From Podarcis melisellensis (taxonomy: Eukaryota), in assembly GCA_964234715.1 (NCBI GenBank), contig OZ174278.1: a stretch of 64,000 nt of DNA; one strand, 5' to 3'. Every line of letters begins with the position of its first letter. Position 1 is the stretch's first letter. Positions 5,117 to 42,675 of the stretch are shown piece by piece. The notes beneath the pieces are model-generated. The model made no database searches. It saw only the letters and a list, made by a program, of their open reading frames with translations, and was not told the DNA's origin. Position numbers and translations under genes: made by a program.

Positions 5117-5118
<2 letters not shown>

Positions 5119-6811: not shown

Positions 6812-7923
6812 CCCCTGGACTCTCACTTGTGAGGTGCCTTAGGGTTTTATCCTCTCCCCTATGCTTTTTAACATCTACATGAAGCCGCTGGGAGAGATCA
6901 TCAAGGGGTTTGGGCTGGGTGTCCATCAATATGCAGATGATACCCAGCTCTACCTCACCTTTAAATCAGAACCAGTGAAGGCAGCGAAGGTCCTGTGTGA
7001 GTGTCTGGAGGCAGTTGGAGGGTGGATGGCAGCTAACAGATTGAGGTTGAATCCTGACAAGACAGAAATACTGTTCTTGGGGGACAGGGGGTGGGCTGGT
7101 GTGGAGGACTCCTGAATGGGGTAACTGTCCCCTCAAGGACCAGGTGCTCAGCCTGGGAGTCATTTTGGACTCACAGCTGTCCATGGAGGTCAGATTAATT
7201 CTGTGTCCAGGGCAGCTGTCTACCAGCTTTATCTGGCACATAGCTGTCAACATTTTCCTTTTTTTAAAGGAAATTCCCTTATTCCAAATAGGATTCCTCG
7301 CGAGAAAAGGGAAAAGTTGACAGCTATGATCTGGCACGCAGGCTGAGACCCTACCTGCCCACAGACTGTCTCACTAGAGTGCCTCATGCTCTGGTAATCT
7401 CCCGCTTGACTACTGCAATGCACTCTACGTGGGGCTACCTTTGAAGGTGACCCGGAAACTGCATTTAATGAGGCAGCTAGACTGGTGACTGGGGGCGGCC
7501 GCCGAGACCACATAACACCGGTCCTGAAAGATCTTCATTGGCTCCCAGTATGCTTCCAAGCACAAATCAAAGTGTTGGTGCTGACCTTTAAAGCCCTAAA
7601 CGGTCCGGTATAGCAGAAGAAACGTCTCCACCCCCATCGTCCAGCCCAGACACTGAGGTCCAGTGCCGAGAGCCTTCTGGCGGTTCCCTTGCTGCAAGAA
7701 ATGAGGTTACAGGGAACCAGGCAGAGGGCCTTCTCGGTAGTGGCACCCGCCCTGTGGAATGCCCTTCCAGCAGAGGTCAAGGCAATAAGCAACTATTTTA
7801 CTTTAAAAAGACAACTGAAGGTGGCCCTGTTTAGGGAAGTTTTTAATGTTTGATGCTGTATTGTCTATAATATTTGGTTAGAAGCCGCCCAGAGTGGCTG
7901 GCGAAACCCAGCCAGATGGGCGG
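6812..7923 (+). mobile_element. L2-clade LINE, 5'-truncated (RT C-terminal half and 3' UTR); tail resumes at 8360-8390
   Basis: ORF 6861-7115 reads LFNIYMKPL...HQYADDTQLY...WMAANRLRLNPDKTE; downstream frames give SRLDYCNALY, HITPVL and RAFSVVAP; 3' UTR GAAGCCGCCCAGAGTGGCTG followed by an (ATT)n tail. Confidence 0.92.
7239..7328. mobile_element. 90-bp hAT-type MITE nested in L2
   Basis: Perfect 13-bp TIRs CATAGCTGTCAAC / GTTGACAGCTATG; perfect 8-bp TSD ATCTGGCA at 7231-7238 and 7329-7336. Confidence 0.92.
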
Positions 7924-8359
7924 TGTAATGGTTATAGGGGTTGCTCGTGCTTAAGTTGCCGCCACTCCTGGCTAGGTTACCTGGTTAAACCTTTTATGTC
8001 TGGACAGCCCTTCACTTCGTGGCTGTTTCAGTCGCTAGCAGAATCCATCAGTGGGCGTTTCTTGAACCTCTTCCAGCAAAGAAGTTCTTTGATGCCAAGT
8101 CTCTGCCTACTCTCCCTGCGCGGAAGTCTTCTGCGCAGGGTGGGTGTGGGCAGCAGAGGACCTGTGCTCTCCCCGCTGGTCTCCGGTGAAGAGTCCTGGA
8201 GCCCCCTCTCCGATTCCCCCATCCGCCCCCCCTTTATCCCTGGTGTTACGCTGATTTTCTTCCCCAGCCGATGAGCTGCCTCTTTCCCTGCTGGGCCCTT
8301 CTCCAGCATTGCTTGGGAGCCTTGCCTCCGCCTCTGGCTCTGATGGCAGTTCCCTGACA
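7924..8359 (-). mobile_element. Solo LTR (Gypsy/ERV-like) inserted in the L2 3' UTR
   Basis: TGT...ACA termini; 5-bp TSD GGCGG at 7919-7923 and 8360-8364; the L2 tail continues after it. Strand is tentative. Confidence 0.8.
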
Positions 8360-8529
8360 GGCGGGGTAAAATAATAAATTATTATTATTATAGTAACTGA
8401 AAAAAACACTTGAAAGACAAATTTCCAAGAAATTAGAACAAAACAAAATTTGAACAATCAACCATATGTCAGGAGTGCTCTGATGGTGTTTCCTGCTTGG
8501 CAGGGGGTTGGACTCGATGTCCCAGCAGA

Positions 8530-8800
8530 TTCATGTAGATGTTAAACAGCATGGAAGATAACCGGCAACCTGAGGTACTGCTAATGCCATTGTCCATGTG
8601 GCAGAACTGTAGTCCCTTAGCACAACCTTCTGGGCCATCCTGCCAGAAAGGACTGTGACCATCACCACACCTCCAAGTCTTGATGAAGCCAGTTGGACTA
8701 GAAGAACACCACAGGTGATGGCATTGAAAACTGCTGAGAAGTACAGGAGAATGAAGAGGGTTGCCCTCCCCCGGCCCATTTCCCAGTCGAAAAGTCATCA
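8530..8800 (-). mobile_element. Degenerate L2 RT fragment
   Basis: Minus frames give LLYFSAVFNAITCGVLL (cf. LLDLSAAFDTIDHGILL) and LSSMLFNIYM. Confidence 0.7.
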
Positions 8801-9266
8801 ACCAGGGCAAACAAACTCAAGCCATTCCCTAGATCATCTCAATAACACAACATCAGGCCTATAAAATAGATTGGGATTATTATGCCCATTTTGCAGATGG
8901 GGATTGACTGTGAGTTGGAGGTTTGTGTGGAAAGATGGGGAAAGAAAATGGCGGAGGAGACTGGGAGCCACAGTTGCCCACTCCCATCTCATCCACAAGG
9001 GGAGTATGATGGGATGGGAATAGCTACCTGCCACTGCATCCTCCTTATCCCTCACTCACATGTGGACACCACGTGTGGGCCAGAAAGGGGGGGGCAGTTG
9101 ATTGGGAAGGAGGGCGAAGAAGGTGGGAGACTGAAATGGGCAGATTTGCCCAAAAGGTACAGGGATTGGGGGCGGGGAGAACCCTTAAAATGACAGAACT
9201 GAAGAGTATTTTGAGAGGCAGAAGTCTGAGCAGGAAGCTAAGCCCAGTAGCAAGCAAGCAAGCAAC

Positions 9267-9267
<1 letters not shown>

Positions 9268-9304
<37 letters not shown>
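9268..9304. repeat. (TG)n microsatellite
   Basis: Perfect dinucleotide run. Confidence 0.95.
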
Positions 9305-9309
<5 letters not shown>

Positions 9310-12300
9310 TCTACTGAACCTGAGGAGCCTGAAAAATCAACCTGCTCCTTTGAGATCTGGAGTTCAGTCAGATGTATCCAAATAAAAGAGAACATGTTTT
9401 GGTGTTTGGAGGCCTTCTTGGCGTGAACTTACAACATTTTGCCAGAGGCAAAGTCATGAGGTTTCCCCCCATCAAATCAGCATCCTGCCAAGGCTCTGGT
9501 TTTACCAGTAATTCCCACCTCAAACATCTGCACTGCTCATCCACCACATATCCCATAACAGCAGAACTAATGTTTAGAACAAGGAGGGCCATATTTAAAT
9601 TTAATAAATAATAATCATTATTCTTTGGTTCAAGAAGCTGATCCTAATACAGGGATTGGTAGTAGACCCTGTGCTGGGGTGAGACTAGGCTTTATTTCAC
9701 TCGGGTGAAAGACCCAATTTGGCACCCCCACCCCCTGTGTGCATTTGTGTACACACACACACACAGAGGCTGGGGAGCTGGGCTGCCCCTCTGGAAACGT
9801 CACCTGGGGCAAAAAAAACCAGCTAAGCCCCCCCCCACCCCCGTAGCTATGGTACTGCCCTGTGTGGTGGTGTTTTTAAACTTAGTTGTACTTTAATATG
9901 GTCCAAAGGTGCTATGGGTAATCCAGAAGGACTGGGAGCTATTTGGCAGGAAAAGGTAAACCATGGACATTTTAACCACAATATAAATATTAATCCTAAT
10001 CACCAGCCCATGTTGGAGATATCCTTTGGCATAATGTGCCCAAATATGCAATAATTATGTGAAAATGGAAGCTATTATAAACAGTAATTAATACCAGCCG
10101 TCTTGAGGCAGTTTGCTCAGCATCCCCTTTTGAAGACAACTTCAAAAACAGCAGCAAAATGTGCGCCAGATCCAGCAAAGCACATCAGCAGCCCTAGGGT
10201 AGCTTTTCCAGTGGCGAGTTGTATTACCACCCCCAACATGTGTTGCAAACATCTCAGGTTTTACTTCTGTTGGAATCTCACTAGCTTTTTTTTTTTAAGC
10301 CAACAACAATATAATTGCTGATTTACCACCGCTGTTCAATCTAATTTACTTCTTAATGGTCCATTTGCATAGTGGAATTTGCATTTTATTTCACAGAGGA
10401 TGTTACAGCTCCACCTGCCCTATTTCACACTAGACACCAGCAACTGGAGACAAAAATGATGATGTGGGGGGGGGGGAAGGAGAGAGAGAAAATGGGGAGG
10501 GGGAACACACCTAGGAGAGTTCCTCTTGCCAAAACTGCTTGACTGTGAAGGTGAGGTCCTCTCTTATAAGAGGGGAGGAGGTTGAGTCGGTGGAGAAATT
10601 GCAAGCCAGTAACCAAAAAGAATATTTCATAACGTCTTTTGGGTGTAGCACAGCTCAAGAGAATTAATTTTTAGGTGTGATGCTATCACTTGCCTCTCTC
10701 CTGGTAAAACCTCATTCATTCTATGCAATGTGACAGGAAACTGCAATGATATAAGCTGACACTCTGCACCTTATCAAAAAGTAGCATCGCTCTGGCATCA
10801 CTATCTTCTTATTGACTTGGGCCTAGCCCAAATGCTAGTGATCACAGATAATGTTACAAGATATTATTCTCTACCTTGAGGAAAGCAATCAAAATAGCAC
10901 AAAATTAGAAGCTGACTTTGGGTTTGTGTCGGGAGGGTTTACACTCTTCCTACATGGTACATAATTTATTATATATTTTAGCTCAGCTTCAAGGCTTTGT
11001 TCCTGGGGTAACAGCTGTCATTTTAAAGGTGACTCATTACAGTCATTTTCAGAGCCCCCAGCAGATGGATGGGTCTTTATTTCCCAGGGAAAACTGACAG
11101 GTTATGGTTTTCAGCAGCTTTTAATCATTTGAATCAAACTTTTACACATCTGTCAATTACTTTGTTTTGTAATATTAATAATACTGCAATTGGAAGATGA
11201 CAAAGAACATTTTCCCCTTGTTATAAAGTAAAAAACAAAACAAAAAATAAGTAAAGATCCACCTAAGTAATGAATGAAGGTACCAGTATTTTTAATAATA
11301 GTGGTATACCCTAGTTCAATATTATCTTGTGAGGGCATTTGTGGTCTCTGCCAAGCAACAATGAAAATGTACAATGGTTAAAACATGGCAAAAAAGAAAG
11401 AAACCCCAACCCCATATATATTTAAAACTGAAGTCAAAAAGCAACCTTTGTCCAGGCAAAGAAAAATGACACCACGTAAGTGGTATTTCAATATGGTTTA
11501 TATGGAACTCATGTCTCAAAAGACAAGAATGGGTATAAATGCTGCTTTTAAACTAGGAAATGCACAGGTGATTCTCAATAACCTAAGCTGTATAGCACGC
11601 TCCAGGTGTTGAATGCATCCCTACTAACCCTGTGTCCCATCAAGCTTAATGCATTCACCCAGTTGTGCATTGGGATGCACAAGGTGGTGACTGACCCCTA
11701 GTTTTGCATACACCCATCAGGAAAACAGGTCAGGAATTTGAGCCTGTATTCCTAAATACAACTCCTAGGGAATAAGCCCCATGCAACAGGCTGTGACCTC
11801 TGAGCAAACATTTATGGGCTTGTACTGTGAGCCCCTGGTGACTTGTGTTCAGCTTGGTAAGTCCGGGTTGGGCAGCTCTGACATACATTATTTAAACTAA
11901 TCTTCACAACTATTCTTATGGTCAGCCATTGTTGCTACAGCTGTATCAGACCAAGTCGTCTTAATTCACCTTCATTAGGATTGTATTTTTTACTGGCAGC
12001 AGCTTGCCAAGATCTCAGGCCAGAGCCTTGCCCTGCAATCTGAGACCCTCTAACCATCCCCAGCAATTGAAATCAGGACCATCTGCATGCTCTAATACCA
12101 AGCAGCAGACACTTCCAGAAGCAGTGAGTTTACATCTTGCCCTATTCCATCTTTCCTATTGCAGATATCTTTCTGGCTAAGGGAGTGGCAAAGATCTTGA
12201 ACGAGTATGCGATACTTGTGTTTCCCTTTTTAAAGAAAATTTCCCCAAACTATTTGTAAAGAGAAATAGTTATGACAAGCTTATTAGAGTAGTTTTGGTT

Positions 12301-14961
12301 GTAGTTAGGACATGCCTGCCTTTCAAAAACTGGGCAGCATGTTTTCCAAGCTGCCTGAAATTTGGCAGATCTGATTTATTTATTTAAAGGCTGCTATAGC
12401 AGAATGCCATTTGGAAGGAAAACAAAAAAGTTCCAGCAGAAGAGCACCTATGGGTGCAATGGAAAACAACAATGAAAAAGCGCAAGGAAGCAATCGAAAT
12501 GCTTGTGAATTAATGAAATGGATGTGAATTAATGACCAACACATGTTTCTGTTGTAGGCCCCAACCCCCACAATGATACACACGATACACAAAATGTTTT
12601 GAATGCCAAAGGGAGAAGAGCTGCTGTTGTGTGGTGTGCATGTGTATGTGTGGAATGTAGGGAAAGAGTTAAGCACCCCTCCTTCCCACCATTTCTCTAC
12701 TCACCTCCTGTAAAATGGCACTGCGGCTTCGTTATATCCAAGAAGTGCTTACCAGTGGAGTGTCTCCGTCAGCAGAGCAGAGCCCAGCACTTCTGCCTCA
12801 TCCAGCACAGCAAATCTGGGATTGGGTTGCTCTGTACCCATTAGGAGCGTTTTGAGACTGAGCCTTGAAGGCAGAGGGCAGCACTGGAAAGAAATGTTGT
12901 GAGTATGGCAGGAACTAAGGGCGGCGATCTAGGACATGCCTTCAGCACCTGCATCAAGGAGGCCGTGCTCACTGCTTGGCTAGGACCATTGCAACGTGCT
13001 GTGGCAGCAAGCAATTGCCAATGAGAACAAAACACCACTTTATCCAGGAAAGGGTCTGTTCCCAGGGTTTCCCTAGGGAGATCAGAACAGAGCTTTTCAC
13101 CAGGCAATGGAGGATCAGCCATATACCACACAACTGGGCATGTCCTGGTACTGAACAGCACTTTCAGTATTCCTTCCTCTCTTGTATGCCAGAGATGAGA
13201 GAATTTTCAGCATGTGATACAGTATACTGTACATAGGGAATTTTGTGTCATTACAAGTTTGTATCCTCTGAAATAATGAGCATTACAGGTTTCTGGGGTG
13301 ACAAAACTTGTGAATGCCCTGGCGACTTATCTTGGTTCCATACTTGATGCCATTAAATCAAACACACATCAATGGAGTCACAATAATCACTGATAATTAG
13401 CAGAGCAGCTCAATATTTATGCATTTGCAGTACTGTGTCCAAGCCTGCAGCCTCTCTGGAGAGAGTGATTTGATTTACTTATTGAGTATTTGTTTTTATA
13501 TCCTGCCTTTCCTCCAATCAGGAGCGCCAAGCACATAACTACTTAAATAAAATACAACCTAGCATCCCATAATATTTTTTTCAAAAATATCATAACATTC
13601 ATTAATCTGAGATGGTCCCTGGTCCAAATCCTGGCCTATCATTTTGCTTTAGCTAAGTTACTGGTTTCCATGCTGCCTTTCCCGTGTGACATATAGGAAT
13701 GCCGAATATAGGAACGTCTATCTGAACTGACTGCTCTATGACCCTGGGAGGAAGAACTGGCTCTCCTTCTCAAGGCTGTGGGCCAACACATCTGAGCCCA
13801 TGCCAGCCATCTGCTAAGGTTTCCTCACATAGCTCTGACATTGGAGCCTCTGCCAGTCAGATAGACCATACTGGGCAAGAGGGAGCAATGCCTCGAGTCA
13901 GTAGAAAAGTAGCCTTCTCCTCAGTTTCTTTCCTGAAACCTAGAAATCCCTCAACGTGTCCTTATATAAGCTGTGGTCAAATATAATTCTGTACAGAAAA
14001 AAACAAGAAGCAGCTGGCACCATACAGTTAAGTTATAATGAAAACATGAGGTGGCTGCCATTACAGAGTCCTGCACTAATGAGAACAGTGGGAGTCTAGC
14101 ATTGCAATAGTCTAATGAAAACAGGAAATGGCTGGCATTACATTGGTATAATGAAAACAGGAGGAGGCTGGCAATATTCTGAGACAATGGGAGGGGGGGA
14201 ATGAAGATTTCTGGCCCTAGTAGATTTAATCTATGTTATATATGACCCCAATGTGCCTGTGATGGAGACTGAAAGCTGGGTCAAAGCATGCTGCTATTTT
14301 AATTTTACTCAAACCGTATGTTTTGGTCAGTGAAATGGAAATGTGCTGTTTGAAATAGACGACTTACGATTTGATTGTATTGTACCATTCCTGATTAACC
14401 TCAAGAAGACCAAAGGTAGAGAGATGCTCAGGAAAAATGAAATTCAGTAAATACATAGGCTTCCCCATTGTGGTAAATCTCTTAGTTGAATACACAGACA
14501 CACACACATTAAAAGAGATGATAATATTATATAAACCAGTGTCAAAATGATTAATAAACCAAATGATAGACAATAATGACTGTTACATTTCTTGGTTTTT
14601 ATCTCTGTGAGATATAGGAATCCAATGGTTTCTGAGGACTCACAACTATTGTGTGTGGCTGTATCCAGACGGTACTTTATCCCTGATATTTGCATTTTAT
14701 GTGACATAAATGCTAGTTCTGGAAACCTAACAGAGGAAGCTTGGTGCTCATTTCCATGTTAATTGCTCCCAGGAAAAAAAATCTGAGCCCAACCTTCTTA
14801 ACCCAGAAAGTCATGGGATGAAATTTGGGTGGTATCCCAGCACCTGCCACTTTTTTTTGGGGGGGGGGGAGAAGCCCACGAGCAGCTAAGAGGTGGAGGG
14901 TAGTGGCATGTCTCATGGCATCTGCTGTTGTGTCACAGCATTATTTCAATGAAAAGCCATA

Positions 14962-15219
14962 CAGTGGTACTTCTGGTTACGAACTTAATTCATTCTGGAG
15001 GTCTGTTCTTAACTTGAAAACTTGAAACCGTTCTTAACCTGAGGTACCACTTTAGCTAATGGGGCCTCCTGCTGCCGCCACTGCACAATTTCTGTTCTCA
15101 TCCTGAGGTAAAGTTCTTAACCTGAGGTACTACTTCCAGGTTAGCAGAGTCTGTAACCCAAAGTATTTGTAACCCAAAGTGTTTGTAACCCGAGGTGTTT
15201 GTTACCTGAGGTACCATGG
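14962..15219. mobile_element. Tc1/mariner-pogo-type MITE
   Basis: TA|CAGTGGTAC...GAGGTACCATGG|TA; TA at both ends; subterminal repeats TTTGTAACCC and GTTCTTAACCTGAGGTA. Confidence 0.85.
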
Positions 15220-16414
15220 TATAATGCCACAGTTAATGCTTTGTAATAATTTTTATTAAATTTTTCCTTTTACAAATTTGCCATCTCAAACAATTTTCAC
15301 AAATTTCAACTTTTTGGACTTCCACCAGCTTCTCCACCAATCATATATTATGTTTGAAGAATACCAAATGACCATTGTAGAAATTATTATGAACAAAGAA
15401 ACTAAATAAAATCAAATATAAGGATATGTGCACATACAGGTTTTCTCAGGGAATGGCTATTATACTGTAAAAGTTAAAACCATGGGCATTCTGTCTAACT
15501 CTCCACTCTGCCGCACGTCCCTTCATAACTTTCAACGCATTTGAGGTGTCCATTTCACTTGATCCTCTCTACATGCATACAGAATAAAATGATACCACAC
15601 TACAAAAAATGAGTCTGGATCTGCACATCCCTGAATTCGACCAGTCTGTTTTTCTGCTAAACCTGCGTTGTCCAGTTGAAATGCCCTCAAATGTACACCA
15701 GCATCTTGCTATGTCTAGTTATGCTGCAATCCAGAGCAATAACAGAAATTCATAGCAAATCTTAATTTTGAAGACCTGCCTGTCTGCCAGATTATTAAGC
15801 GTGGGGAGCTCAAGAAGAGGGGGGGTCGATGAAAGCAACATGGCAGGGATGGAGTCTCTGGACCCCTAGTAGTTGTTCATAGAGCATCCTCCCTCCTGGC
15901 TGAAGAAGTCGTAGAACGTATAGAAGAGAAAACTAGGTGAAAATAAATGCTTAGGGAGGAGGGATGAAGTCTTTGGAAAATTAATCATTCAAGTAATGAT
16001 CCTTCTTCTTAGAACAAAAACGTCAGGGTTTTCTTTTCATTTCCATTTCCTGCTTTTCAGGCTGACCTCTGTAGTTAGGTAGTGTTTTTTTAAAAAAAAT
16101 TATTGCCACAGGAGAGGGTCTTCTTTGCAGCTCCCAGACAGTAAATATACAGCTGTCTTCTGTTTTATTGTGACTGTTAAAGACATCAGAATCTGATTGA
16201 TTGTGATTTCCCTCATCTCGCCGGATGAAATGCGCATCGTTCAAGGCTACAGTAAATTAAGAGGTTGCATCAATCCATGTGCATGCAAACTCTTAGTTCC
16301 TTGGCATCCCATCCTTCCACCTTTTCTCATCCTTAAGATCAACTTCATCTTTGTGGAGATCTTCCAAAGCAACCCATCAAGAAAACCAGGAAGGGAATGC
16401 AACAGAGACGGGAG

Positions 16415-16418
<4 letters not shown>

Positions 16419-16450
<32 letters not shown>
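16419..16450. repeat. (AATC)n microsatellite
   Basis: Tetranucleotide run. Confidence 0.9.
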
Positions 16451-17669
16451 TAATTAAACCAATAGCATGCCAGAAAGTTCCAGCGTGAAAAATGGTGGGA
16501 AGCTTCTTTTTTCTCAAGTTTTTTTCTCAAGCTTCCTGCTTGAGCTGCCAAGAAAATATTCCAGTCAGGTACAACCGACTGAACCAGCACTGTGATGCAA
16601 ATAAGCCAGAGATAATCAAATCACACTTTCTAATCGAGTTCTGCTAGGCCAGCACACTTTATTTCTCTCTAGCTGGCAGTTTCCACATTGTTTTACAATG
16701 CTGCAGAATTAGCTTAAATAATAAATACTTGTGAGTTTATGATTTTTTTAATGCCCAATGTATATTTGAGGAGGGGAAAATGTGAGTAGAGATCGAAAAA
16801 CTATCTTGCTGTGCTGTTTTTAAAGCAGTGTTTAGTCTCTGACTCAAATTTTGTTCCTGCTAGGAAACATTGGCCTCCATTTGGTGGAAGGAAAAGGAAT
16901 AAAATGGGAGGAAATGTCTCCATTAAGTATAAGCTTTTATAACTCCTTCCAAATGGTTAAAAGCAATTATCTTGTCAAGGAAACATTTGTTAGGGTTCAC
17001 GGGATCTCCTCTACATGGCCCTGGCATCAGTAAAATCAGCGCCTGTGCTTGTGTGAGCCTCAAACATGCCCTAATTGTGATACGAGGTGCCACACGCCAT
17101 GCATCCAAGATTAGACGCTGGCCCTTCGCCACGGATGCTGGCATCACAGGAACCAGCTTGGTCACCTGCCAAACTTCTGTTGGGATTTGGATTCACTGAT
17201 TCAGGCTTTCATCTTTCCCCCTGCTCTCAACTTCCTGACTGTCCAAATTGGTATTTTGTTTTATTTTTCATTTTCAATGCCTGGGTAACATCCAGGCAGC
17301 ACAAGAAAGCAAAGAGTTGAAGGAACATTTTCCCCACATTTCATATAATGCTCCACACCTCTATGTGCCTGTCCACTTTTTTGCGGTGAACTGTTTGTTG
17401 CTGGTGGTGCTGAGGATGTGACTATAAACTGGGAAGAAGGAGAAGAGCAGAAAGTAACTGTGTACACATGAGGAATCTTCAACATTTCACGTGGGAAGCC
17501 CCCAGGGGAATGGGGCTGTTTCCTCCAATGAAAAGACTGCTCTGTGTGCAGGCCAGCACCATCGGGTAGCAGCATGAAGCAGTTGCTGCAAGCGCCATCA
17601 TGAAGTGCAGGAATGTATCTGCATGGGGTAAGAAGACTTTTTAAAGTGCTGGCACTAGCACGGTTTATT

Positions 17670-17732: not shown

Positions 17733-19318
17733 CATGCTTGTAGTTTATTGACCTAAGAGAACTTTGTTGTTGGGTGGTATTTTTTAATTGACATAAATAA
17801 AACAAATGACAATGGGAGGCCTTGAAGCAGTTTTGAGAGTGAATCCACTCCAGGCATTGAAGGATTTGCAACACCCAACACAGTCACCATGTGTGAACTA
17901 CACTGAGGAGAATGCAGAAATTGAGGAAGCAGAAGAAGAGGCAAGGATCCCGAGGGTTGGTAAGAGAGATACGAAAACGGGGGAAACAGGCATAAAGGTG
18001 TAAATGAAGCCTGCTGAGAATGAAGCCAAGGATGGCACCCACCCACTAATATACAGCCCATCTCTATGGGAAACTTCTCTGTACAGCAGGGCCACTGTCT
18101 AGATGAATATAAATTCTTTTTCACCAAATCTAGTGCCAGAGTAGTTTCAGAGGGCACTTGGTGTTTCAGACCCACTTTCTAAAAATCAGATATTTGCAAC
18201 CTGCAGGACTGGGAAGAAAGCTGCCCAGGAAGGATGGGGTGGTGCATTTCCCAAGTTTTATTCCATTAATCTTCAATGGACTGGCAGTTCTCCATGTTCT
18301 GTTCCACCATTCAGATTTTCTTTGAGAATTCTACCATTAATGTCAAAATTTGTTCTTGTGCTGTTTCTTCTATTTGCATGAGTAATCGTGTGTATTAAAA
18401 CACATCTTGTTTAGTTAATGGAAAGCACAGGAGTTACATTTAAGCTTCTTTATCATCCTTGCAAATCCCCTGCTGAGAAATGCACAGAGAAGAGAAACAA
18501 ATCGCCTGGACAGCAGGTTAATTAATGCCTGAAAAGGCCAGTCTGGTTTCATATTTTCAGCCTCATCCAGATAAGGAGATCTGTGTCCAAGGCAGCTATA
18601 GAAAGCTGACCATGCAACTCTAGCAAACCCCACTTACAAGGCCATCTCAGTGTAATTTTCACAATTGTAAAAACAAATAGCCCCAAAGCACTTGGGTTGG
18701 ACGACACAGTGCGTGTGAAAAAGACATTTCCAAGCAGTTTTTCGTTTAATCATGTGATAATGTCTGCAGTTGCATCAACATTTCATTAGTTCTACGCTTC
18801 AATTATCTTCAGTTAAACAAATCTGCCAATAACTCTATGTAGAAATTCAAATCAAAAGAATTTGTGTGGTTAGATCACCAAAACCATCTAGAAATAAATT
18901 CACACGACTCAAATTTTAGTTTGAGGTTTGGCATAATTTTGGCCACAACTTTATTGATTACAGGCTGTGATTGGTTTGCTTAGGCATTAGTTTAGACTAT
19001 CTGAACCTGTCCCAGACTATCCAGGACAGGAAAAGAACTGACAACTGCCAGTTGCAGATGTCAGTCAAGCACCCTGGTAGATCAATTGGGATGGGTGCAG
19101 ATCCCTAAGATCACACACTGAAAGCTCCCAGGGGCTCTTGCACAGCCCTATCCCCCTTTCAGGGGTCGGACAAATGCATGGCGAACCCCTGGATTCCTTT
19201 CATGGAATACCTACACAGCAACCATTGGAGGGACAGGTCACAGCTACGCTTTGTCCCCTCCACACACATTAACCAATGCCTAACCGCCACACAAGCACCT
19301 GCTCTCGCCGCCAAACCA

Positions 19319-19879
19319 TCACACCTGTAACCAGTCCCTTAACCCTGCTGACACCTTGGTCAGCCAAACATCATTTCCAGCCTTGGAAAGATGCACTCCA
19401 TCAGATCTGTACAAGTCCGTGTCACTGAAGGTAATGCCTGAGTAACGGATAACTGCCCCTCCCAGAGCCAGAACCTTCTTGGCCACTGCGCTATCCAGGT
19501 GCCTTCTGGCCCACGTGCTGGTAGCTGGGCAGTGGCTTCCACGCCACACATGTCGCTGAAGCAATTGCGACCAGAAAATTTTGAGTCCAGAAAGAGCCGT
19601 TGCCATCTCAACCAAGTTCTCCTGTATGCGGGTACGCATACTCCTGCCGGGGGAAGACGGCAGATCATTTTCGCCCAGCTGCACCACCATGGCTGCGGGA
19701 GGTGCCTCGCAGGACAGCCTCCACCGCACCATCGGGAGGAACTCCTCCCATCACATTCCCCATCTGGACATCCAGGACACTTACATATTGCCAGGAAGGC
19801 CAAGTCAACGTCCAAGCCCAGACTCTGCTGCCCGTTGCTCAGCCCAGTACACAATGCTGTGGCCGACAATTCAAATGTG
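19319..19879 (-). pseudogene. SGNH/GDSL-type hydrolase ORF of the YR retrotransposon (four in-frame stops in the N-terminal part)
   Basis: One frame reads HI*IVGHSIVYWA (block I Ser)...SWMSRWGM*W (block II)...VVQLGENDL (block III)...LYRSDGVHLS (block V Asp-x-x-His). ORF 19319-19732 is its open C-terminal part. Confidence 0.88.
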
Positions 19880-19883
19880 CAAC

Positions 19884-20770
19884 ATATCCTTTGTTTGTAA
19901 GCGTCAGACTTCCAGCTTCTCATATCCTTATTCTTTTCCACGGACAAGCCCCAGTGGGCAGCTATAATGGCAGCGCCAATGCGAAAGGAATGAGGTGCAA
20001 ACCCATCGGGCTGGACACCACAAGCTGCAATACCTTTTTGCATCACTCGGTTAAATTGATGCCTCGCCAAAGGGGTTCCGTTTTCATGAACTAGGAATGC
20101 ACCTGCCCTGGGGGGCCACAACGTCAGGTACTTCCTGGCATCCCTAACCAGGCAAGGGCCTTCCCTGCCGGTAGCTGGAAGTCGCAGCAGGGCACCACTG
20201 CCCAATTGGTCAGTTTTAGATTGCCTTATAGCAAGGACCAGCTCAGCTTCAGATAATTCCGCATCCCAAAGCAACAAGCCTCGGGGCTCTCGGCCCTGGA
20301 CGGCTTCAAGCACGACCTCTCCAACCCTCAAGGCACCAAAAAGGGTGACTGAAAAAGCCACCGCTCATACCTGGACCAGCAGACAAGTCTTAACTTGCTG
20401 TGTGTCCTACCCAGTAGGTCAAAAGTGACCGGCTTCCTGGCCATGGACCTTGAGGGCTGAAGTTTACCCCAGCCCTCCAAAGCCTTGCACATACAAGCTT
20501 GACGCAAAGATCTCTGGCAAAAAGAGATTTGCTGAAAAAGGAACTAGTAGCTGATTGAATCCGAAGGGTCTTATTGGCCCTACCGAGCTGAAATAGGTGA
20601 GCCAAGTATTGCAATACTTGCTCAGGAGATGGAGGCACCCAAATTTCCACTGCTCTGGACTGAAAGCGAAAGGTTAAGAATTCAGTCCAGGCCCTTTTGT
20701 ATGAACGAAAAGTGGAAGGGGAAACTGAAGCTACTACTCCCTGTAATACTAAATGCTGCCAAGGCTCCAA
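19884..20770 (-). pseudogene. Tyrosine recombinase (DIRS/Ngaro type), frameshifted
   Basis: N-terminal SPSTFRSYKRAW...VLQYLAHL; after a frameshift KALEGW...RKPVTFDLL; catalytic motifs FGALRVGE, RQSKTDQ, HSFRIGAA and WKSDAYK; removing one 4-nt repeat unit restores YKGYV with the catalytic Tyr. Confidence 0.92.
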
Positions 20771-21002
20771 AGGTGCTCTGGAAAAGAATCCAGCAATTGA
20801 TGGAAGTCCGGGGCCTGAAGCCTGAAGCGCTCCATCTGAAAATGGGATAAAGCGTCGGTGATTTCATTAGAGGCCCAGGAATTAAACGGGCTGAAAACAC
20901 TATATTAAATTTCAAGCAGCACAGCGCAAAGGCCCACAAAAGTGTCGTTACTCTACTGGGGTGCGAAGACTGTTTCATCCATATGCTCACCACTGCCTGG
21001 TC
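20757..21002 (-). pseudogene. C-terminal portion of a DIRS-type RNase H
   Basis: QAVVSIWMKQSS...CLKFNIVFSARLIPG, then a frameshift to NEITDALSHFQMERFR...PEHLWSLG; matches DNQAVV...HIPG..N..ADALSR; overlaps the recombinase start. Confidence 0.82.
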
Positions 21003-21660
21003 CTCAGCATTTGAGCTAGAAGAAGATGCACCCGTGGAAGATGTGGTGTCAGCATCACAACTCCGCCTGGCACGCTTCTTTGAATGCTTTTTCCGGCAAC
21101 GCTGACTGGCAGTAGAGGGCCTCTTAGGGACTGGCAGGCTGTCCTCTTTGGATGAAGCCACAGCAGGGGCCTGATCTTGAGGTTCTGCAGTCATCTGGAA
21201 CAAACTTCGAGAGCGTGAGGTACTGGCCTGACCCACACCCTGCCCAGATACAGAAGCAACAATCCCTGGCTCGGACCGAGACCGAGGTGAAAGCAGTGGT
21301 AGGCAGGACCCCGGCTTTTACTGGTGCGTTGCAGAGAAGCATCTAAGCTACCATGGCGCCCACATGATGAGGCCGGTACCAGGATGCAAGATAACTGGGA
21401 ATCGCTAAATAAGACCCCCAGACCGAGGAAAAGCCTCCCCATCATCGCTAGAGTCAGAAGGGCCATGGGGCTCAATGACTGTTGAAGAAGAATGCCCGGG
21501 GGTCCTGAGTCAACCCTGACATGACTGCCTCCAAGTGTCCTGCAGCTTGGGTCGGTGGCAAGGATGAAGGCTCAGTCCTAAGCAACTGGGAAGGCCAGCA
21601 GATTATTCTTTTGGAAGGAAGGGCCGTCTCCGCAGAAGCTGGGACCCTCTAAGGAGGCAT
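21003..21660 (-). pseudogene. gag-like ORF1 N-terminal remnant of the YR retrotransposon
   Basis: Starts ATG CCT CCT TAG AGG (MPP*R, probably MPPKR originally); Pro/Ala/Ser-rich with a basic stretch RKKHSKKRARR and a poly-Ser; lies upstream of RNase H and the recombinase. Confidence 0.6.
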
Positions 21661-21704
21661 AGTGACCAAGCTTAATGAGGGAGAAGGAGAGAAAATTCAT
21701 AATC

Positions 21705-23577
21705 GGGACTTCCGGGTTGACGCGATCGGCTAATGGCGGATTCCCTCCGAGCTCCGGAGGGAATCGGCTCCGCTGAGGACGGGTCTCACCGCGCCGGCGA
21801 CGCGGGGACCCTCAGAAACCACAGGCGCGGATGCCTGTGGACTTGGTGACTCGGTGGGCACCTTAAGCGCCCTCCTCGACAGTCGAAGAGCCTTTTTAAA
21901 GGCTGCGGAGAAGGTACGAGGAGCGGCGTGGTGCTGAGAGTAGACCGCTACCTCAGCGGAGCGAAGCCGCAAACCATTGCCGGAGAGCGTCAACTTTCTT
22001 CCCGACATTTGGACTGGAAACAAATACCCCGTGAGTAGAACGAAATTTGGATTTTAGAAGAAATTTATCCTTCATCTGGAACGAACGGGGGGGGGGGGTT
22101 GTGCTAAAGGGAAGTCCGCACCCCCCCTTCTGTGCAGACAATTTGAAGCAAGGAACGGAAACCTAAGATCGGATTAAAAAATCTTTTTGTGCCTTTTGGG
22201 ACTGACAAGAGATTCCATTAATTTGTGAGAATAAGTTTCTATCTTTTTATTTAAAGCTGTGCTGGAGGGAAGAGGCGTTTTTTGAAAGTTTTTATGAATC
22301 CCCCCCCCCTCCGGGACCCTGGAGTGTCCTGTATCAACTTAGCGCCAAAAAACGGGAGTTTGACAGCTGTCAATTGAGCTGTCAAACGGCTGGACCAAGA
22401 TAAGAACTGTATCCTTATATCTCTCTGACTTAAAGGTGTTACATTGAACTAGAAGTGATTTGAAACAAAGTAACAACAAGTAACCATAAAGTAAAGGACT
22501 GTTGGTGGGGAACTTTGAAAAATGGCAATCCCCCTAGGGGAAACCAGTGATATTACAATGGCGGCAGAAGGAAAACTACTGGCAGAAATAGAAAGAGCTC
22601 TTTTTCTCGTGGGAACTTTACAAGAGCAAGAGATGGTTATGGAAAAGCAGCTTATGACCTTGATTTCTAAAACAAGCAACCCTGCTGGTGGAAATGAGGA
22701 TCTGATCTTGGAAGATTCTACAGCTGAACCAGAAAAAACATCCTTGGAGCTGGTGGAAAAGGAGTCTGGAGGGAAAAAAGTGCAGGAACATGAATTTGTG
22801 CAGCCAGGGAACAGAGAACCCTCTTGGATTACAAGTTATGAGAGGAGAAAAGTAAAGGAGGAAGTCCATGGACACTATGGAGTTAAAGTTAAAGGAATAA
22901 AGAAACACAACTGGGGCTTCCTCCTCTTTTCTGGCCTTGCTGACTGTGATCTGGGGGAACCTTTGGCAGAACCCTGGCAGCAAACTCGATTGGAATTCGA
23001 CTGGAGAGAAAGCGAGGAGATTGTGTTAGACATCCCTCGAGACTTGGAGACCTACAAGAAGGACTACCAACATAACAGGCAAAGAGAGACTCAAAGGGAC
23101 TTAAAAGCCTCTGATGTGAGAAATCCAGGCTAAGAGTTTTACAAGAGGACAGTGATCTGGGAAGGGACAGATACCAGGGCAGGGAGGAAGGGGGAAAAAA
23201 ATTTCACTTCATCTTATGACTTTTGGATTTTACAATTCTAATCTATATTTCAATATGAAAAAATGGGAATTTATGGTATAAGAACCTGGATCGATCTTAG
23301 AAAATGGATTTAATGTATATAAGAGAAGTAGACAAACAAATTGGACTTAACAAAGGGAATTAACTTTAAGTATAACAAGAATAGGTTTAAGGAGTGAAAC
23401 AAGAACTTGCTGAATTATACAGGAGAATTGGGATGCATGGGGGGGTGGGGGGAAGTCAGGGAAAGAGGGTTATGAAAAAATCTATTTGTGTTTTTCTTTT
23501 TTTTTCTTTTTTGTTTTTTCTTTGTTTTGTGTTGTTTTAAAAATGTGAAAACCTAATAAAAAGATTTATATAAAAAA
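21705..23577 (+). mobile_element. Full-length 1.87 kb non-autonomous L1-type (HAL1-like) retroposon with a single ORF
   Basis: Perfect 15-bp TSD AGAAAATTCATAATC at 21690-21704 and 23578-23592; begins GGGACTTCCGG; CpG-rich 5' UTR; AATAAA at 23555 then an A-rich tail; GGGAAGTC 3' motif shared with the L1 ends near 24240 and 30750. Confidence 0.85.
22522..23133 (+). CDS. 203-aa ORF of the non-autonomous retroposon; predicted N-terminal coiled coil, function unknown
   Basis: Uninterrupted ATG-to-TAA frame with AAAATGG Kozak context; heptad-like LLAEIERALFLVGTLQEQEMVMEKQLMTLISK; Glu/Lys-rich; no RT or endonuclease motifs. Confidence 0.65.
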   Translation: MAIPLGETSDITMAAEGKLLAEIERALFLVGTLQEQEMVMEKQLMTLISKTSNPAGGNEDLILEDSTAEPEKTSLELVEKESGGKKVQEHEFVQPGNREPSWITSYERRKVKEEVHGHYGVKVKGIKKHNWGFLLFSGLADCDLGEPLAEPWQQTRLEFDWRESEEIVLDIPRDLETYKKDYQHNRQRETQRDLKASDVRNPG

Positions 23578-23849
23578 AGAAAATTCATAATCAGCCCTTT
23601 GCAAAATCAGCAGGCTCCTCAATAGGCCTCAACCAGCACAAAATAAAGAAAAAAAGGCAACCCAACAGATTTAGGTTCCTAAAATGGCCGTCACCCCCCC
23701 CCCCACTCGAGGAGGATCCAAGATGGCGCTCCTGCCAAAAGCAGAGTGCATAAAATGGCATCCAAACTTCGCTTAGTCACAGGAGTGACATTCGCGCCAA
23801 AAAATACTCACAAAATGGCCGCTGTGTGCACTAAAGAAAATGGCACTCG

Positions 23850-24335
23850 TGGGAATGAGATAAATAAGAAAGAAAGGAAGCTATTTTTATATGCAGTGAC
23901 TGCAGCAAGAATACTGATGGCTCAGAAATGGAAGCAAGAGGAGCTTCCTACATTAGAAGAATGAAGATTGAAGATGACGGACTTTGCAGAACTTGATAGA
24001 CTGATGGGAAGGATCCGAAATCGACGAGATCAGAGATTTATAGAAGACTGGGAAAAGTTTACAGAGTATATGCATAAATTAAGTGATAATCAAATAACGC
24101 TTGTAAGCTTCAATGAAATTCTGTAAAAAGAAATGTTAGAATATGAGTAAAATAAGATTTAATTTATAAAAAATAATAGAAGTAAGGTTTTAGAAATGTG
24201 TAAGAAATCAAGAAGGGAAGGAGTATCAGTCAAGTTGAGGGAAGTCAAAAAAGAGAATGGATATAAAAAAGATGTATGAACTGTATAAATTTTATATTGG
24301 AAAAAATTGAATAAAAATTATTTTAAAAAAGAAAA
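23850..24335 (+). mobile_element. 5'-truncated L1 (ORF2 C-terminus, 3' UTR, polyA)
   Basis: Encodes LFLYAVTAARILMAQKWKQEELPTLEE*...EDWEKFTEY; AATAAA at about 24310; perfect 13-bp TSD AAAATGGCACTCG at 23837-23849 and 24336-24348. Confidence 0.9.
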
Positions 24336-25581
24336 AAAATGGCACTCGCACCCCCTCTAATCACTACCAATAGCCTCCAGTCCTCCCGGGCCTGCCAATG
24401 GTATTCCTGCCAAGTTTGGGGGCACTTGCAATGGCGTACGCCCCTCTTCCACAGCATTAACGCCCCACCCTGGCTTGCTCTCAGCTAAGGACTGGTGTCC
24501 CCCCCCCAAAAAAAAACCTGGGCACCCAGGATGATGCATCCGCAAAAGAGGCTCAACCGAGTCACAAGCACCATTGGGGGGTTAAAATAATAGGGAATTC
24601 CCCACCAAGCAAGATATGAAACTGCACTCTCAGCTGGCCAGAGACCCTGTTACCCAAACGCTTCCAGCGGACCACTGCAGAGAGGCGCTTGAAGCACGGA
24701 TAAAGGGGATAGATCCCACAGGAAAAAGAAAAAACTGCAAGGGAAGGGGAAAGGGGAGGGGGGAGTTAAGGAAGGACTGGGAAGAGAATTAAATGCAATG
24801 GAAAAACTCCTAGGCTATTCCTTAAATTAGAAGGAAAATAAAGGCAAACTTTCCGGCAGGTTTCCAGAGTCTTTTCCGCTGAGCTCCATCTCCAGTGTGA
24901 TCCGGTGGACAAAGCGAAACAGAAGAATCTCAAAGCAACATGCAGATATATCTATCCCTCGGAAGGGATTTCTGCAACCCCATTGGCCGGAACAGGTCCC
25001 ATGCTTCCGAGGGACCTATCGGGTAGCTGTGGCAATCCAAACTTACCCACCCAAGAGAGAGTCAGTTGTGGTGATGTCTCTGGGAGGAGAACCTGATTTC
25101 CAGAAGAAGATCCAGGTATTTTGGAACCCCCAAATATGAGACATCCAGATGGAGGGAATGCTGAAAGCATCTGTATGGATGTGAGTGTTCCTAATCTCCA
25201 ATGCACTCCATTATTCCTGCCATCTTCTTCACTGGAGTTCACTTCCCATCCACTGATGGGAAGAGAAAGGCCCGTGGACTGTCAATCCCAGTGGTACTTA
25301 CCTTTTGCAATGTAATACAAGCCCTGCTTTCCAAGGAATAATTGGGTGTATATTTTAAGACTCCCAATTGCTCCTTTGCTGCTGTGTCTTTGCCACACCT
25401 GACATCAGGTGAGGGCCAGGTTTGGGGGAAGCAGCTTTGTGGGCCCAATCAGGACCCCTGCAAGGCCTGAATAGGCCCTCATGGTAGAGGTGAAGGCAAA
25501 ATGATAAACAGGCCCATAAAGGTCTCCCTCCAGAAAGAAGATGACAAGTTTGGAATTACTTGAGCAATTCAGAATCTGTAA

Positions 25582-25685
25582 GGATGACCAAACTGCAGGA
25601 GGCAGTGGAAGACAGGAGTGCCTGGCGTGCTCTGGTCCATGGGGTCACAAGAGTCGGACACAACTAAACGACTAAACAACAACAA
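25582..25685 (+). mobile_element. BovB (RTE) LINE 3' end
   Basis: AAACTGCAGGAGGCAGTGGAAGACAGGAGTGCCTGGCGTGCTCTGGTCCATGGGGTCAC...GAGTCGGACAC followed by a (CAA)n tail. Confidence 0.9.
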
Positions 25686-27175
25686 GGATAAACAGTTGTG
25701 ACTGACCATATGGTGCACAGGAGGGGAAACAAGTGTTGTACCCTCCAAACGTTGTTGAACTCCAGTTCCCATCACTCCCAGCCACCATTACCAGAAAGTG
25801 CCCAGATTTTAAAACTATGGAAGGATGTTTATAGCTGCTCTAACCTCTTCTCCAAAACCATTTGAGGGGCAAAAAAGTTTTCCAATAGCATGATTGTTGA
25901 AAAGCTGATAACTGTCAACTGATAACAGTGAACTGTAACTAAACCACCACAATGAGCTCCAATGGGCAGATTTAGAGGCTGTTGGCTGAAGTCCAAACAA
26001 TCCTGACAGTGAATCTCCAGATTTTGATCAAAGTGAGCTGCTTATAGCCTCTCTCAGCCTTCTGTTTCAGATCCCACTGAAATCCCTGAGTGTATGTTAC
26101 ATGTTGAATGTATAGCACTGGTAACTTGGCAGACCGCCCCTATCTGTAAACAATATTTTTCCTTTGCCAGCTTTAGAGGTAAAATGGCCTATTCTCAGAT
26201 AACAAATTTAGTCAGAGATGACATCTTTATTACATTATTAAACACATCAGTCAATAACACCTGGTGTAATTGCATCTTCCTATGTGACTGGGGTAGTTAT
26301 TTAAATGATAGATCCCCCCCCACCGAAAGTCAAACTATTGTTGCTGAAAGAATATTGTTCTAATAGGATTTTACAAAAGGCATAGTGGATCATGACGACT
26401 ACTTGTCTGGATCGCAGATAAGGAAATGACCTGTGCTCAGATTACTCTCAAAATTATTTGAAATTGTGTTGTAAAGAAAGAGCTCTTGATTATACCTGAT
26501 GCTTGTCTTGTGCTACATATCAAAACTAGCACCTGACAGTTATAGGAGAATGTGAATGAGTGTAACGGTGCAATTATTTTGGAGAAGATGGAGGAACTCC
26601 GTCAAATTTTTTTTTAAAAAAGTATTTAATAGGCATATATCCTCCCCTCTCACTTTCAAGGTCTAGGCAAAGATGAAAAGTGATATTGTTGCAAAAGTAC
26701 ATTGAATGTTCTTGAGTGAGTTGAATATTAAATAGGAGCTGGGGAATCGAAGCCTGTAAGGGCAGAGGAAACTGTGGCAAGGATTGAAGAGGGAACTGCC
26801 ATTCAGACAGGTGATCTTCTGATTCAGACGTCAAATATATTACTTTGAAAATAAGATACAATGCTGGGGTTTTTTTGTTTTTGTTTTTTTGTTTAAATAA
26901 ACAAAATGTGGAAAGGGTAAACTGATGGTTGCATCAACAGAAGACAAAAATGGTGCTTCATCTGTGCAGCAGGAAGGGTTAATGCAATTTGGCAACAGCC
27001 TCTACCACCCTAGTCTCATTTGGCATCACCCCAGAAACGCATCAGTAAGCAAGTTCATATTTGCAGCAAGAAAAGTGGCCAGGTAGGGAGCACCTGCATA
27101 ACCTTTCATGGTGGTTGTAGGAAGGATTGCATGGCACCAAGCTCAGAAGGAACATATTTCTATGTGTGCAATATG

Positions 27176-29311: not shown

Positions 29312-30329
29312 TAGAAGACATCAAGAAGAGGTGGCAAGAATACACAGAAGAACTATACCAGAAAGATAGGGATGTCTCGTACACCCCAGGTAGTGTGGTT
29401 GCTGACCTTGAGCCAGACATCCTGAGAGTGAAGTCAAATGGGCCTTAGAAAGCACTGCAAATAACAAGGCCAGTGGAAGTGATGGTATTCCAGCTGAACT
29501 ATTTAAAGTTTTAAAAGATGATGCTGTTAAGGTTGCCAGCAAGTTTGGAAGACTCAGCAGTGGCCAGAGGATTGGAGAAGATCAGTCTACATCCCAATCC
29601 CAAAGAAGGGAAGTGCCAAAGAATGCTCCAACTACCGCACAATTGCACTCATCTCACACGCTAGCAAGGTTATGCTTAAAATTCTACAAGGCAGGCTTAA
29701 GCAGTATGTGGACCGAGAACTCCCAGAAATACAAGCTGGATTTCGAAGGGGCAGAGGAACCAGAGAACAAATTGCAAACAGGCACTGGATTATAGAGAAA
29801 GCTAGAGAGTTCCAGAAAAATATTTACTTCTGCTGCATTTACACAAAAGACTGCGTGGACCACAGCAAACTATGGAGGGTTCTTAAAGAAATGGGAGTGC
29901 CTGACCACCTTATCCTGAGAAATCTCTATATCAGACAAGAAGCAACAATTAGAATTGGATATGGAACAATTGATTGGTTCAAAATTGGGAAAGGAGTACG
30001 ACAAGGCTGTATATTGTCTCTCTGCTTATTTAACTTATATGGAGAATTCATCATGCAAAAAGGCTGGGCTGGATGTATCCCAAGCCGGAATTAAGATTGC
30101 CAGAAGAAATATCAACAATCTCAGATATGCAGATGACACAACCTTGATGGCAGAAAGTGAGGAGGAATTAAAGAACCTTTTAATGAGGGTGAAAGAGGAG
30201 AGCACAAAATATGGTCTGAAGCTCAACATCAAAAAAAGGAAGATCATGGCCACTGGTCCCATCACTGGAAGGACAGATCCTGAAGCTGAGGCTCCAATAC
30301 TTTGGCCACCTCCTGAGAAGAGAAGACTA
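29312..30329 (+). mobile_element. BovB (RTE) LINE RT fragment, frameshifted and internally deleted
   Basis: DIKKRWQEYTEELY, MLKILQGRLKQYVDRELPEIQAGFRRGRGTREQIAN, KGVRQGCILS and NNLRYADDTTLMAESEEELK. Confidence 0.95.
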
Positions 30330-30850
30330 CAATAGAAGAGTGGCAGTACAAGGTTATGGAGTATGCAGAAAAAGCCAAACTAACTGCAAAAATTTGACAT
30401 CAGGGTGATGAAACATATCAGAAAGAATGGGGGAAATTTATGTTATATATAGAGAAGATGATGTGAAATAGAGAAACCAGTAGAACTAAAATATACCTCA
30501 TAACGGGAAAACACAAGAAATTTATTGGATAATAATATCAAAATGAATTAAAAATGTATATTAGGACTATTGTTGAACAATATTTGTAAATGAATATAGA
30601 CAGACAACAAGAATTGTATATATAGAAAGATTTATTTGTTTACAGGCATTTTATGGGAAAAAATTAAGAAGAAGAATTATATATAAAATGGACAAAGACA
30701 ATGCGAAAAGTTAAAGATGACATAAAAAAGCTGGAAGAAGGAAGGAGGGAAGTCAGCTCGGGAGGGCAAGAACAAATGTGAAATATAATGTATGTGTGTG
30801 TATAGTATTTAACTAAAAATTCAATAAAGATCATCTGGAAAGGGGAAAAA
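30330..30850 (+). mobile_element. L1 3' fragment
   Basis: TIEEWQYKVMEYAEKAKLTAKI...KEWGKF (ORF2 C-terminus); AT-rich 3' UTR with GAGGGAAGTC and AATAAA at about 30823. Confidence 0.8.

Positions 30851-42672: not shown

Positions 42673-42675
<3 letters not shown>

Follow-up and report, generated by a model that had tools for sequence, protein, structure and literature searches.

A candidate non-autonomous, protein-coding retroposon family in the lizard Podarcis melisellensis

Anatomy of the element

The subject of this report is a retroposon of 1,873 bp on a 64,000-nt stretch of contig OZ174278.1 of the lizard Podarcis melisellensis (assembly GCA_964234715.1; the whole stretch is called the window below), which is enclosed by two copies of the 15-mer AGAAAATTCATAATC at 21690-21704 and 23578-23592. 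By blastn and by reading of the sequence the two copies are alike at 15 of 15 positions and constitute a target site duplication (TSD). The unit between them (21705-23577, + strand) has both ends present and starts with GGGACTTCCGG at 21705, from where a 5' untranslated region (UTR) of 817 nt leads to an unbroken open reading frame (ORF; 22522-23133, + strand, stop included) encoding a protein of 203 amino acids (aa). The following 3' UTR of 444 nt contains a G-rich tract (23440-23470) with the 9-mer GGGAAGTCA at 23450, a T-rich, microsatellite-like tract (23480-23540), which was recognized on reading the sequence and skipped as a repeat in the read-depth analysis, and a terminal segment (23555-23577) with AATAAA at 23555-23560 and a short A tail at 23572-23577.

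The unit contains neither a reverse transcriptase nor an endonuclease: apart from the 203-aa ORF, in which Pfam recognizes nothing at E <= 10, its + strand has no ORF of at least 50 aa. The first 286 nt of the 5' UTR (21705-21990), subsequently called the head, have a GC content of 0.64 and a CpG observed/expected ratio of 1.09 with 32 CpG dinucleotides, versus a ratio of 0.56 in the remaining 5' UTR and of 0.1-0.2 in the coding sequence and 3' UTR. A preliminary description of this DNA had listed the perfect 15-bp TSD, a 5' UTR of about 800 bp with a CpG-rich first half, the intact ORF, AATAAA and the A tail, together with the lack of a reverse transcriptase or endonuclease, and each of these features was recovered here from the sequence. 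Before insertion the target site reads GGAG followed by AGAAAATTC, with a T-rich bottom-strand primer end (TTTTCT/C). Within the 64-kb window, blastn of the unit finds no further copy.

Relatives and copy number

A word-based protein search returned four full-length relatives, three with 68-71% identity and one with 38%, and a profile of these four, searched with HMMER against 1.84 billion representative proteins with no length limit, added eight proteins of 129-215 aa and nothing else genuine. The sole long match (1,336 aa) belongs to the fibronectin-type repeat proteins and was rejected as a relative. The real relatives number 13 (129-215 aa; P0014 is a 214-aa variant within the P0001 cluster). 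Logan assemblies, the only source of members, supply them on contigs of 0.9-1.9 kb, with at least 19 runs represented; none has a name or an annotated-genome accession in any of the protein sources searched. The single run ERR14654793 contains both P0008 (201 aa) and P0018 (171 aa), which represent divergent lineages.

Not only the ORF but the entire architecture recurs in these samples, as is to be expected for a family. Colinearity of the unit with the contigs L001-L003 extends from position 264 to the poly(A), at about 79% overall DNA identity (76-85% in the UTRs, 80-82% in the coding sequence), and many samples contain the same architecture and ORF at a DNA identity of about 60% or less. 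The 3' end of L002 consists of AATAAAAATTATATT plus A18, and L009 passes from AATAAAAATTTTTAAA at the element end into an unrelated flank, therefore representing a genomic insertion and not a transcript. A T- or CT-rich counterpart of the T-rich tract is present in L002, L003, L009, L011 and L012. The heads of L005, L006 and L008 match the unit at 72-74.5% over 260-480 nt, with proteins that are only about 27-32% identical. Within the subfamily encoding 171 aa (L006, L007, L010-L017), the contigs of about 10 runs are 99-100% identical to each other; L014 opens with Illumina adapter sequence.

Read depth was assessed over 19800-25700 in two DNA runs, X1 and X5, and two RNA runs. An X1 contig of 2,478 nt and depth 61.6 shows 0 differences to 19800-21735 and spans the left junction. 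X1 may thus be the source individual or a near-identical one, hence the contig match at the left junction does not count as independent support of the assembly. Against a single-copy level of about 60-150 in X1, the contig depth, which upon summation is not equivalent to true copy number, amounts to 2,500-11,600 over 22164-23542, to 10,300 over 21967-22163 and to 39,000-53,000 over the first approximately 270 nt. Relative to the single-copy flank, summed depth is thereby 40-870x for the unit as a whole and about 40-190x for the ORF part, inside which single X1 unitigs reach a depth of 430-770 (7-12x flank). The profile is the same in X5, which derives from a second organism, with 7-11 in the flank, 130-740 in the body and 8,000-17,000 in the head.

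The contrast in depth with the flanks shows that the ORF part is present at tens to a couple of hundred copy-equivalents in the source genome, which bears out the earlier inference of a family instead of a one-off. The first 270-450 nt are about 10x (X1) to 50x (X5) deeper than the ORF part. As 5' truncation would lead to the reverse of this excess of the head over the 3' part, the head must also be part of another, more abundant repeat.

The reading frame and its product

The preliminary description had proposed the ratio of nonsynonymous to synonymous substitutions (dN/dS) and retention of the ORF as a check on the family, and both speak clearly for a maintained gene. As determined by the Nei-Gojobori method for the window copy against L001, L002 and L004, dN/dS over the whole ORF is 0.31-0.39, and the frame has stayed open in 14 of 14 aligned members. 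Constraint is concentrated at the two ends of the protein: compared with L001 and L002, the proteins of which are about 70% identical, dN/dS is 0.09-0.19 in the first 50 codons and 0.12-0.19 in the last 40 codons (dS 0.8-0.9), with 0.5-0.8 in the middle. Judged by this substitution pattern, the ORF is a real gene, the protein of which is kept by purifying selection across lineages.

The consensus of the 14 members reads MAA.GKL.AEIER.FFLVG.LQ at the N-terminus, preceded in the clade of the window copy by 12 extra residues (MAIPLGETSDIT) before the common start of the family, and RDL..N.KDYQQNR.RGTERDLRASDVRNPG at the C-terminus with the stop directly after. In the window protein the strongly conserved C-terminus is ...RDLKASDVRNPG (motif RDL..YKKDYQHNRQRETQRDLKASDVRNPG), preceded by an acidic, predicted disordered middle. 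All 14 proteins end in ...ASD[VL][RI][NDS]PG with the stop codon right after PG (23113-23133 in the window copy), which resembles a 2A sequence. 2A peptides occur at the start of some non-LTR ORF1s. A ribosome-skipping 2A peptide (D[V/I]ExNPG/P) was nevertheless rejected for the ...DVRNPG-stop terminus, as in 14 of 14 members no proline follows and the N position varies (N, D, S).

AlphaFold2, run on the 14-sequence alignment, predicts a helix at residues 9-51 with a predicted local distance difference test (pLDDT) score of 65-86; a second helix, at 180-190, is short and weak. Most remaining residues score below 50, and the mean pLDDT of the model is 48. A hydrophobic spacing of 3-4 residues is seen within helix 9-51, and a homotrimer prediction of residues 1-62 gave a score of 0.02, which speaks neither for nor against self-association. 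The isoelectric point (pI) of the window protein is 5.0, and 9 of the 10 relatives computed are at 4.5-6.4; the 171-aa group alone is basic (pI 10.3).

None of the 14 members has a match in Pfam, and none to Transposase_22 in particular, at E <= 10. The PDB profile search retrieved no L1 ORF1p, and its sole match, Neuroguidin at E = 0.47, was considered as chance. The ESM Atlas feature search gave no usable match, the profile search of 1.84 billion proteins no ORF1p-length protein and no Transposase_22, and a regular expression for the RNA recognition motif (RRM) signature of ORF1p no occurrence in six frames over the whole window. In agreement with these searches, the predicted structure contains one helix and no RRM. 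An N-terminal segment with ORF1p-like heptads and the lack of an RRM motif had been noted at the outset, and helix 9-51 on the one hand and the empty RRM and Transposase_22 searches on the other accord with both observations. The window itself offers no L1 ORF1 for comparison. With respect to Pfam, PDB and the exhaustive HMMER profile search, the predicted protein has no detectable relationship to L1 ORF1p or any other known protein.

The structured head and conserved boxes

The head (21705-21990) has a minimum free energy of -150 kcal/mol compared with -117.5 +/- 5.6 for shuffled sequences (z = -5.8). RNAalifold, applied to the three sequences that cover the head, finds compensatory double changes in 11 of 72 predicted pairs, including several in a long-range closing helix and the hairpin CACAGGC/GCCTGTG, which is changed to CACGGGC/GCCCGTG. 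The pattern, derived from three sequences only, is such as a functional fold would give. Across lineages the head is more conserved than the DNA of the ORF. Rfam, which includes SINE (short interspersed element) heads of tRNA, 7SL, 5S and snRNA type, has no match at E <= 1 over 21500-23800, and the 97-aa antisense pseudo-ORF of the head, searched against the protein collection for other carriers of the head, has no matches either.

An ETS-like ACTTCCGG is located at +4 (21708-21715, + strand), within the first 17 nt that are covered by the window copy alone, and a YY1-like AATGGCGG at +28 (21732-21739, + strand) in a block that is identical between the unit and L005. The CpG-rich head probably contains a putative internal RNA polymerase II (Pol II) promoter. 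Two RNA-seq runs of a related organism, organism B, of which about 12% of the reads of each run were used, show 5-21 reads per base on 21573-22163, with the majority letters of the family rather than those of the window copy. Repeats bearing the head are thus transcribed in the organism B samples.

Further boxes are conserved downstream of the head. Nine positions (C-CGTGAGTA) of the splice-donor-like CCCGTGAGTAG (22027-22037, + strand) are invariant in all five aligned 5' UTRs, and a block composed of a G-run, AAAGGGAAGTCCGC and a C-run (22090-22127, + strand) is equally kept in the 5' UTR alignment with its core GGAAGTCC and the C-run invariant. The palindromic TTGACAGCTGTCAA plus GCTGTCAAA element (22360-22386, + strand) is kept among relatives, as 92-93% conserved patches in L005 and L006, and the contigs of L001, L010, L016 and L017 begin at this element.

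The 5' terminus GGGACTTCC (21705-21713) is the reverse complement of the GGAAGTCC and GGGAAGTCA boxes at 22109-22117 and 23450-23458; direct reading of the sequence shows GGAAGTCC to be the reverse complement of nt 2-9 of GGGACTTCC. This terminal complementarity may reflect end-to-end 5'-3' pairing of the RNA or ETS-type sites in both orientations.

The link to L1

The 15-bp TSD, within the range of about 7-20 bp that applies to L1, the A tail after AATAAA and the T-rich nick site of the unit are hallmarks of L1-type target-primed reverse transcription. The nick-site type resembles the site of a neighbouring L1 fragment (TTTT/C), which is a 5'-truncated L1 3' end (23851-24338, C-terminus of ORF2 and 3' UTR) within 23838-24351 with the 13-bp TSD AAAATGGCACTCG. 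A contig of X5 joins 23836 to 24336 and bypasses the L1 fragment; the insertion is absent there and thus lineage-specific or polymorphic. A second L1 3' end (approximately 30330-30835) follows a remnant of a Bov-B/RTE-type reverse transcriptase (frame with YADDTTLMAESEEELKNLL, approximately 30100-30330) and carries the GGAGGGAAGTCAG box 83 nt before its tail.

A common denominator of the unit and L1 is the 9-mer GGGAAGTCA. Four matches are found in the window versus 0.67 expected, a number reached by 0 of 100 shuffles, and three of the four are located 83-127 nt upstream of a retroposon A tail, namely in the unit and in both L1 3' ends (24239 and 30747, 83-99 nt before the A tails). A 3' motif in common with the L1 ends of the window had been reported at the outset, and its occurrence at 23450 and in two of two L1 3' UTRs substantiates this. 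Among the relatives, L002 and L003 possess the box, as does the distant group of L007 and L012, where it has the form GGGGAAGTCA.GAAAAGA, and in the unit and L002 it lies within a G-tract that fits a quadruplex pattern (G7-T-G6-AAGTCA-G3-AAAGA-G3 in the unit). As the two L1 3' ends are barely alignable to each other (z = 3.1) and yet both possess the box, it looks like a conserved element of the L1 3' UTR that is also found in this family.

TSD, A tail, T-rich nick site and the short 3' box common with L1 make L1 ORF2p the probable driver of mobility. Of the earlier proposal that the element is moved by the L1 machinery, the insertion hallmarks therefore stand as observed (15-bp TSD, A tail, TTTTCT/C), and it is the part of ORF2p that we infer.

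Discussion

Cumulatively, the features of the locus suggest a modular element. A structured CpG-rich head is followed by conserved boxes in the remainder of a long 5' UTR, and these by a single gene, the product of which is small, in most members acidic, and composed of a predicted amphipathic N-terminal helix, a predicted disordered middle and a conserved C-terminal motif. The 3' UTR contributes a G-rich box, a T-rich tract, AATAAA and poly(A). Our reading of the unit, to which a probability of roughly 0.8 is assigned, is that a member of a multi-copy family of non-autonomous, polyadenylated lizard retroposons was inserted here at full length and fairly recently. The preliminary description had at its core a complete, young, non-autonomous coding retroposon with an unrecognizable ORF1p, and depth, colinear relatives, dN/dS and the empty family searches all support it.

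The closest comparison is with the HAL1 ('half-L1') elements of mammals, which according to PMC5753468 (citing Smit 1999, Bao & Jurka 2010) are non-autonomous L1 derivatives that encode only ORF1p. Like HAL1, the lizard element is about 2 kb in length, multi-copy, with one selected ORF, no ORF2, poly(A) and TSDs, and presumably mobilized in trans by L1 ORF2p. Unlike HAL1, its protein is not detectably ORF1p by Pfam, PDB, profile search or AlphaFold2, is much shorter, mostly acidic and predicted to be largely disordered, the head is a conserved structured RNA common with a more abundant repeat, and the host is a lizard. Judged by its layout the unit is, in logic, the lizard counterpart of mammalian HAL1, from which it departs in the very feature, ORF1p, that defines HAL1.

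Other systems resemble the element in single aspects. HeT-A of the Drosophila telomeres is a Gag-only non-LTR element that relies on the reverse transcriptase of TART/TAHRE (PMC5537684) and likewise combines a single structural-type ORF with the reverse transcriptase of another element; the HeT-A ORF is, however, a recognizable Gag and HeT-A is targeted to telomeres, whereas the lizard element is dispersed with TSDs and encodes a protein without known domains. SVA, SINEs and processed pseudogenes are non-coding or passive passengers of L1 (PMC3747384) with the same insertion hallmarks and L1 dependence, and the lizard unit can be described as a SINE-like modular head with a LINE-like (long interspersed element) tail box. 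In contrast to those passengers, which have no selected ORF, the family keeps an ORF of 170-215 aa at dN/dS of 0.3-0.4. The human L1 3' UTR possesses G-rich, quadruplex-forming tracts (PMC4407331). The lizard unit likewise has, about 100-130 nt ahead of its poly(A) site, a G-rich tract that fits a quadruplex by its sequence pattern.

With respect to mechanism, the internal Pol II promoter in the head would drive transcription of the element, and a resident L1 would supply the ORF2 protein for copying of the mRNA in trans. The element protein would act in cis on its encoding RNA, or on the polysome that translates it, and bring the RNA into the L1 reverse-transcription complex, thereby replacing the role that ORF1p has in HAL1-type elements. 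As the protein is acidic, it would more likely serve as an adaptor between proteins, with the N-terminal helix and the C-terminal motif as its contacts, than as a coat of the RNA. Taken to its conclusion, this outlines a so far undescribed class of lizard L1 parasites, in which a structured head common to several non-autonomous families, and possibly to L1, is combined with a new acidic adaptor unrelated to ORF1p that tethers its own mRNA to the ORF1p/ORF2p complex during synthesis. The proposal is a tentative one, for which we would give somewhat less than even odds. If true, it would constitute a protein-based route of L1 hijacking, distinct from the RNA mimicry of Alu and other SINEs and from the retained ORF1p of HAL1.

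Several alternatives to the reading of the unit as an L1-dependent coding family need to be considered. The 203-aa ORF could be a shortened, fast-evolving lizard L1 ORF1 in which loss of the RRM and C-terminal domain has spared the coiled coil, with both UTRs derived from L1, and the unit hence a true half-L1 of HAL1 type. Such an origin is suggested by the HAL1-like layout of one ORF, no ORF2 and L1-type insertion hallmarks, by the position of the predicted helix where ORF1p has its coiled coil and by the 3' box common with L1. ORF1p is, however, basic and the family protein acidic; neither Transposase_22 at E <= 10 in any member nor L1 ORF1p in the PDB profile search was retrieved, the RRM signature is absent from the protein and the six-frame window, and among the 1.84 billion representatives there is no protein of ORF1p length, the one long match being of fibronectin type. 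An ORF1 origin is therefore considered unlikely, though it deserves serious attention. A lower probability still is given to a protein that is dispensable for the mobility of its element and acts instead on L1 or the host, as a dominant-negative ORF1p partner or a regulator, with the element itself moving as a passive poly(A) RNA. L1 can mobilize poly(A) RNAs without a protein of their own, as in processed pseudogenes (PMC3747384), and the acidity of the protein, its one helix and its short conserved C-terminus would suit protein binding. In a selfish, non-autonomous element, however, purifying selection on the ORF over deep divergence finds its simplest explanation in a failure of ORF-defective copies to spread, which implies a benefit in cis.

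The mRNA-like layout, with a CpG-island-like start and ETS motif followed by a long 5' UTR, ORF, AATAAA and poly(A), would also fit processed retrocopies of an unannotated host gene, the highly expressed mRNA of which is repeatedly copied by L1, with the window copy intact by chance. Purifying selection on the ORF and the 99-100% identity of the 171-aa group across about 10 samples are compatible with such a gene. An ORF depth of 40-190x flank and a far higher one in the head, in excess of the 3' part and thus opposite to 5'-truncated retrocopies, as well as several divergent lineages, two of them within one sample, are difficult to reconcile with it, and a homologue with annotation or name is lacking in every source, all members being on Logan contigs of 0.9-1.9 kb. 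The UTRs are moreover about as conserved as the coding sequence, the head appears as a structured RNA with covariation and the splice-donor-like site is kept, all of which make host-gene retrocopies very improbable. Least weight of all, close to none, is given to a one-off internal deletion of an autonomous L1, for which the L1-like 3' box alone could be put forward. This had been named as an outcome that would overturn the family, and it is contradicted by the high depth in the source genome and by architecture and ORF, which recur in many other samples at DNA identities from about 79% through about 60% to lower values.

The reading of the unit as an L1-dependent coding family has in turn to accommodate several observations that weigh against it. 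In Smith-Waterman alignment, the 3' end of the unit scores z = 1.4 and 0.9 against the two L1 3' ends compared with dinucleotide shuffles; at this shuffle-level similarity, an origin of the whole 3' UTR from L1 was rejected, and only the short box is in common. The window has no full-length L1 and no L1 5' end for comparison with the head. In the two RNA-seq runs the reads are on the head only, with 0-1.4 reads per base on the ORF. The abundance estimates are from summed contig depth and not true copy numbers, the acidic charge of the window protein and of 9 of the 10 relatives speaks against an RNA chaperone of ORF1p type, and the role of the protein, for which the preliminary description had suggested a dominant-negative or RNP-hijacking activity, is purely conjectural.

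L1 parasites known to date are of two kinds, either without a protein, as SINEs, SVA and processed pseudogenes, or with ORF1p retained, as HAL1 in mammals. A family with a selected small protein of its own and no reverse transcriptase suggests that a parasite can supply its own factor for access to the L1 machinery. With 1.9 kb, one protein of 23 kDa and a conserved structured head, the element could be a tractable system for the minimal RNA needs for ORF2p choice, and it is of relevance for the annotation of squamate genomes, as the ORF is unnamed in every protein source searched. A literature search, with Dfam and Repbase outside its scope, found no description of a coding, ORF2-less L1 dependant in squamates, and a search by ERR run accessions found no papers.

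Other features of the window

The left flank of the unit (18890-21660), read earlier as DIRS/Ngaro-type, contains ORFs of 333 and 184 aa with no Pfam match at E <= 0.01, and Pfam gave nothing for the other large ORFs in the window. The right flank (23593-23850) shows several AAAATGGC(C/G) repeats and a YY1-like CCAAGATGGCG beside a C-run. Both the unit and the L1 fragment may here have inserted into another retroposon, the 5' part of which this flank would represent. Further downstream, 25585-25685 is extremely abundant, the summed contig depth reaching 6.8 million for X1 and 1.4 million for X5 and the RNA coverage about 500 reads per base on either strand. This repeat is bordered by hundreds of different loose ends and is probably a SINE core.

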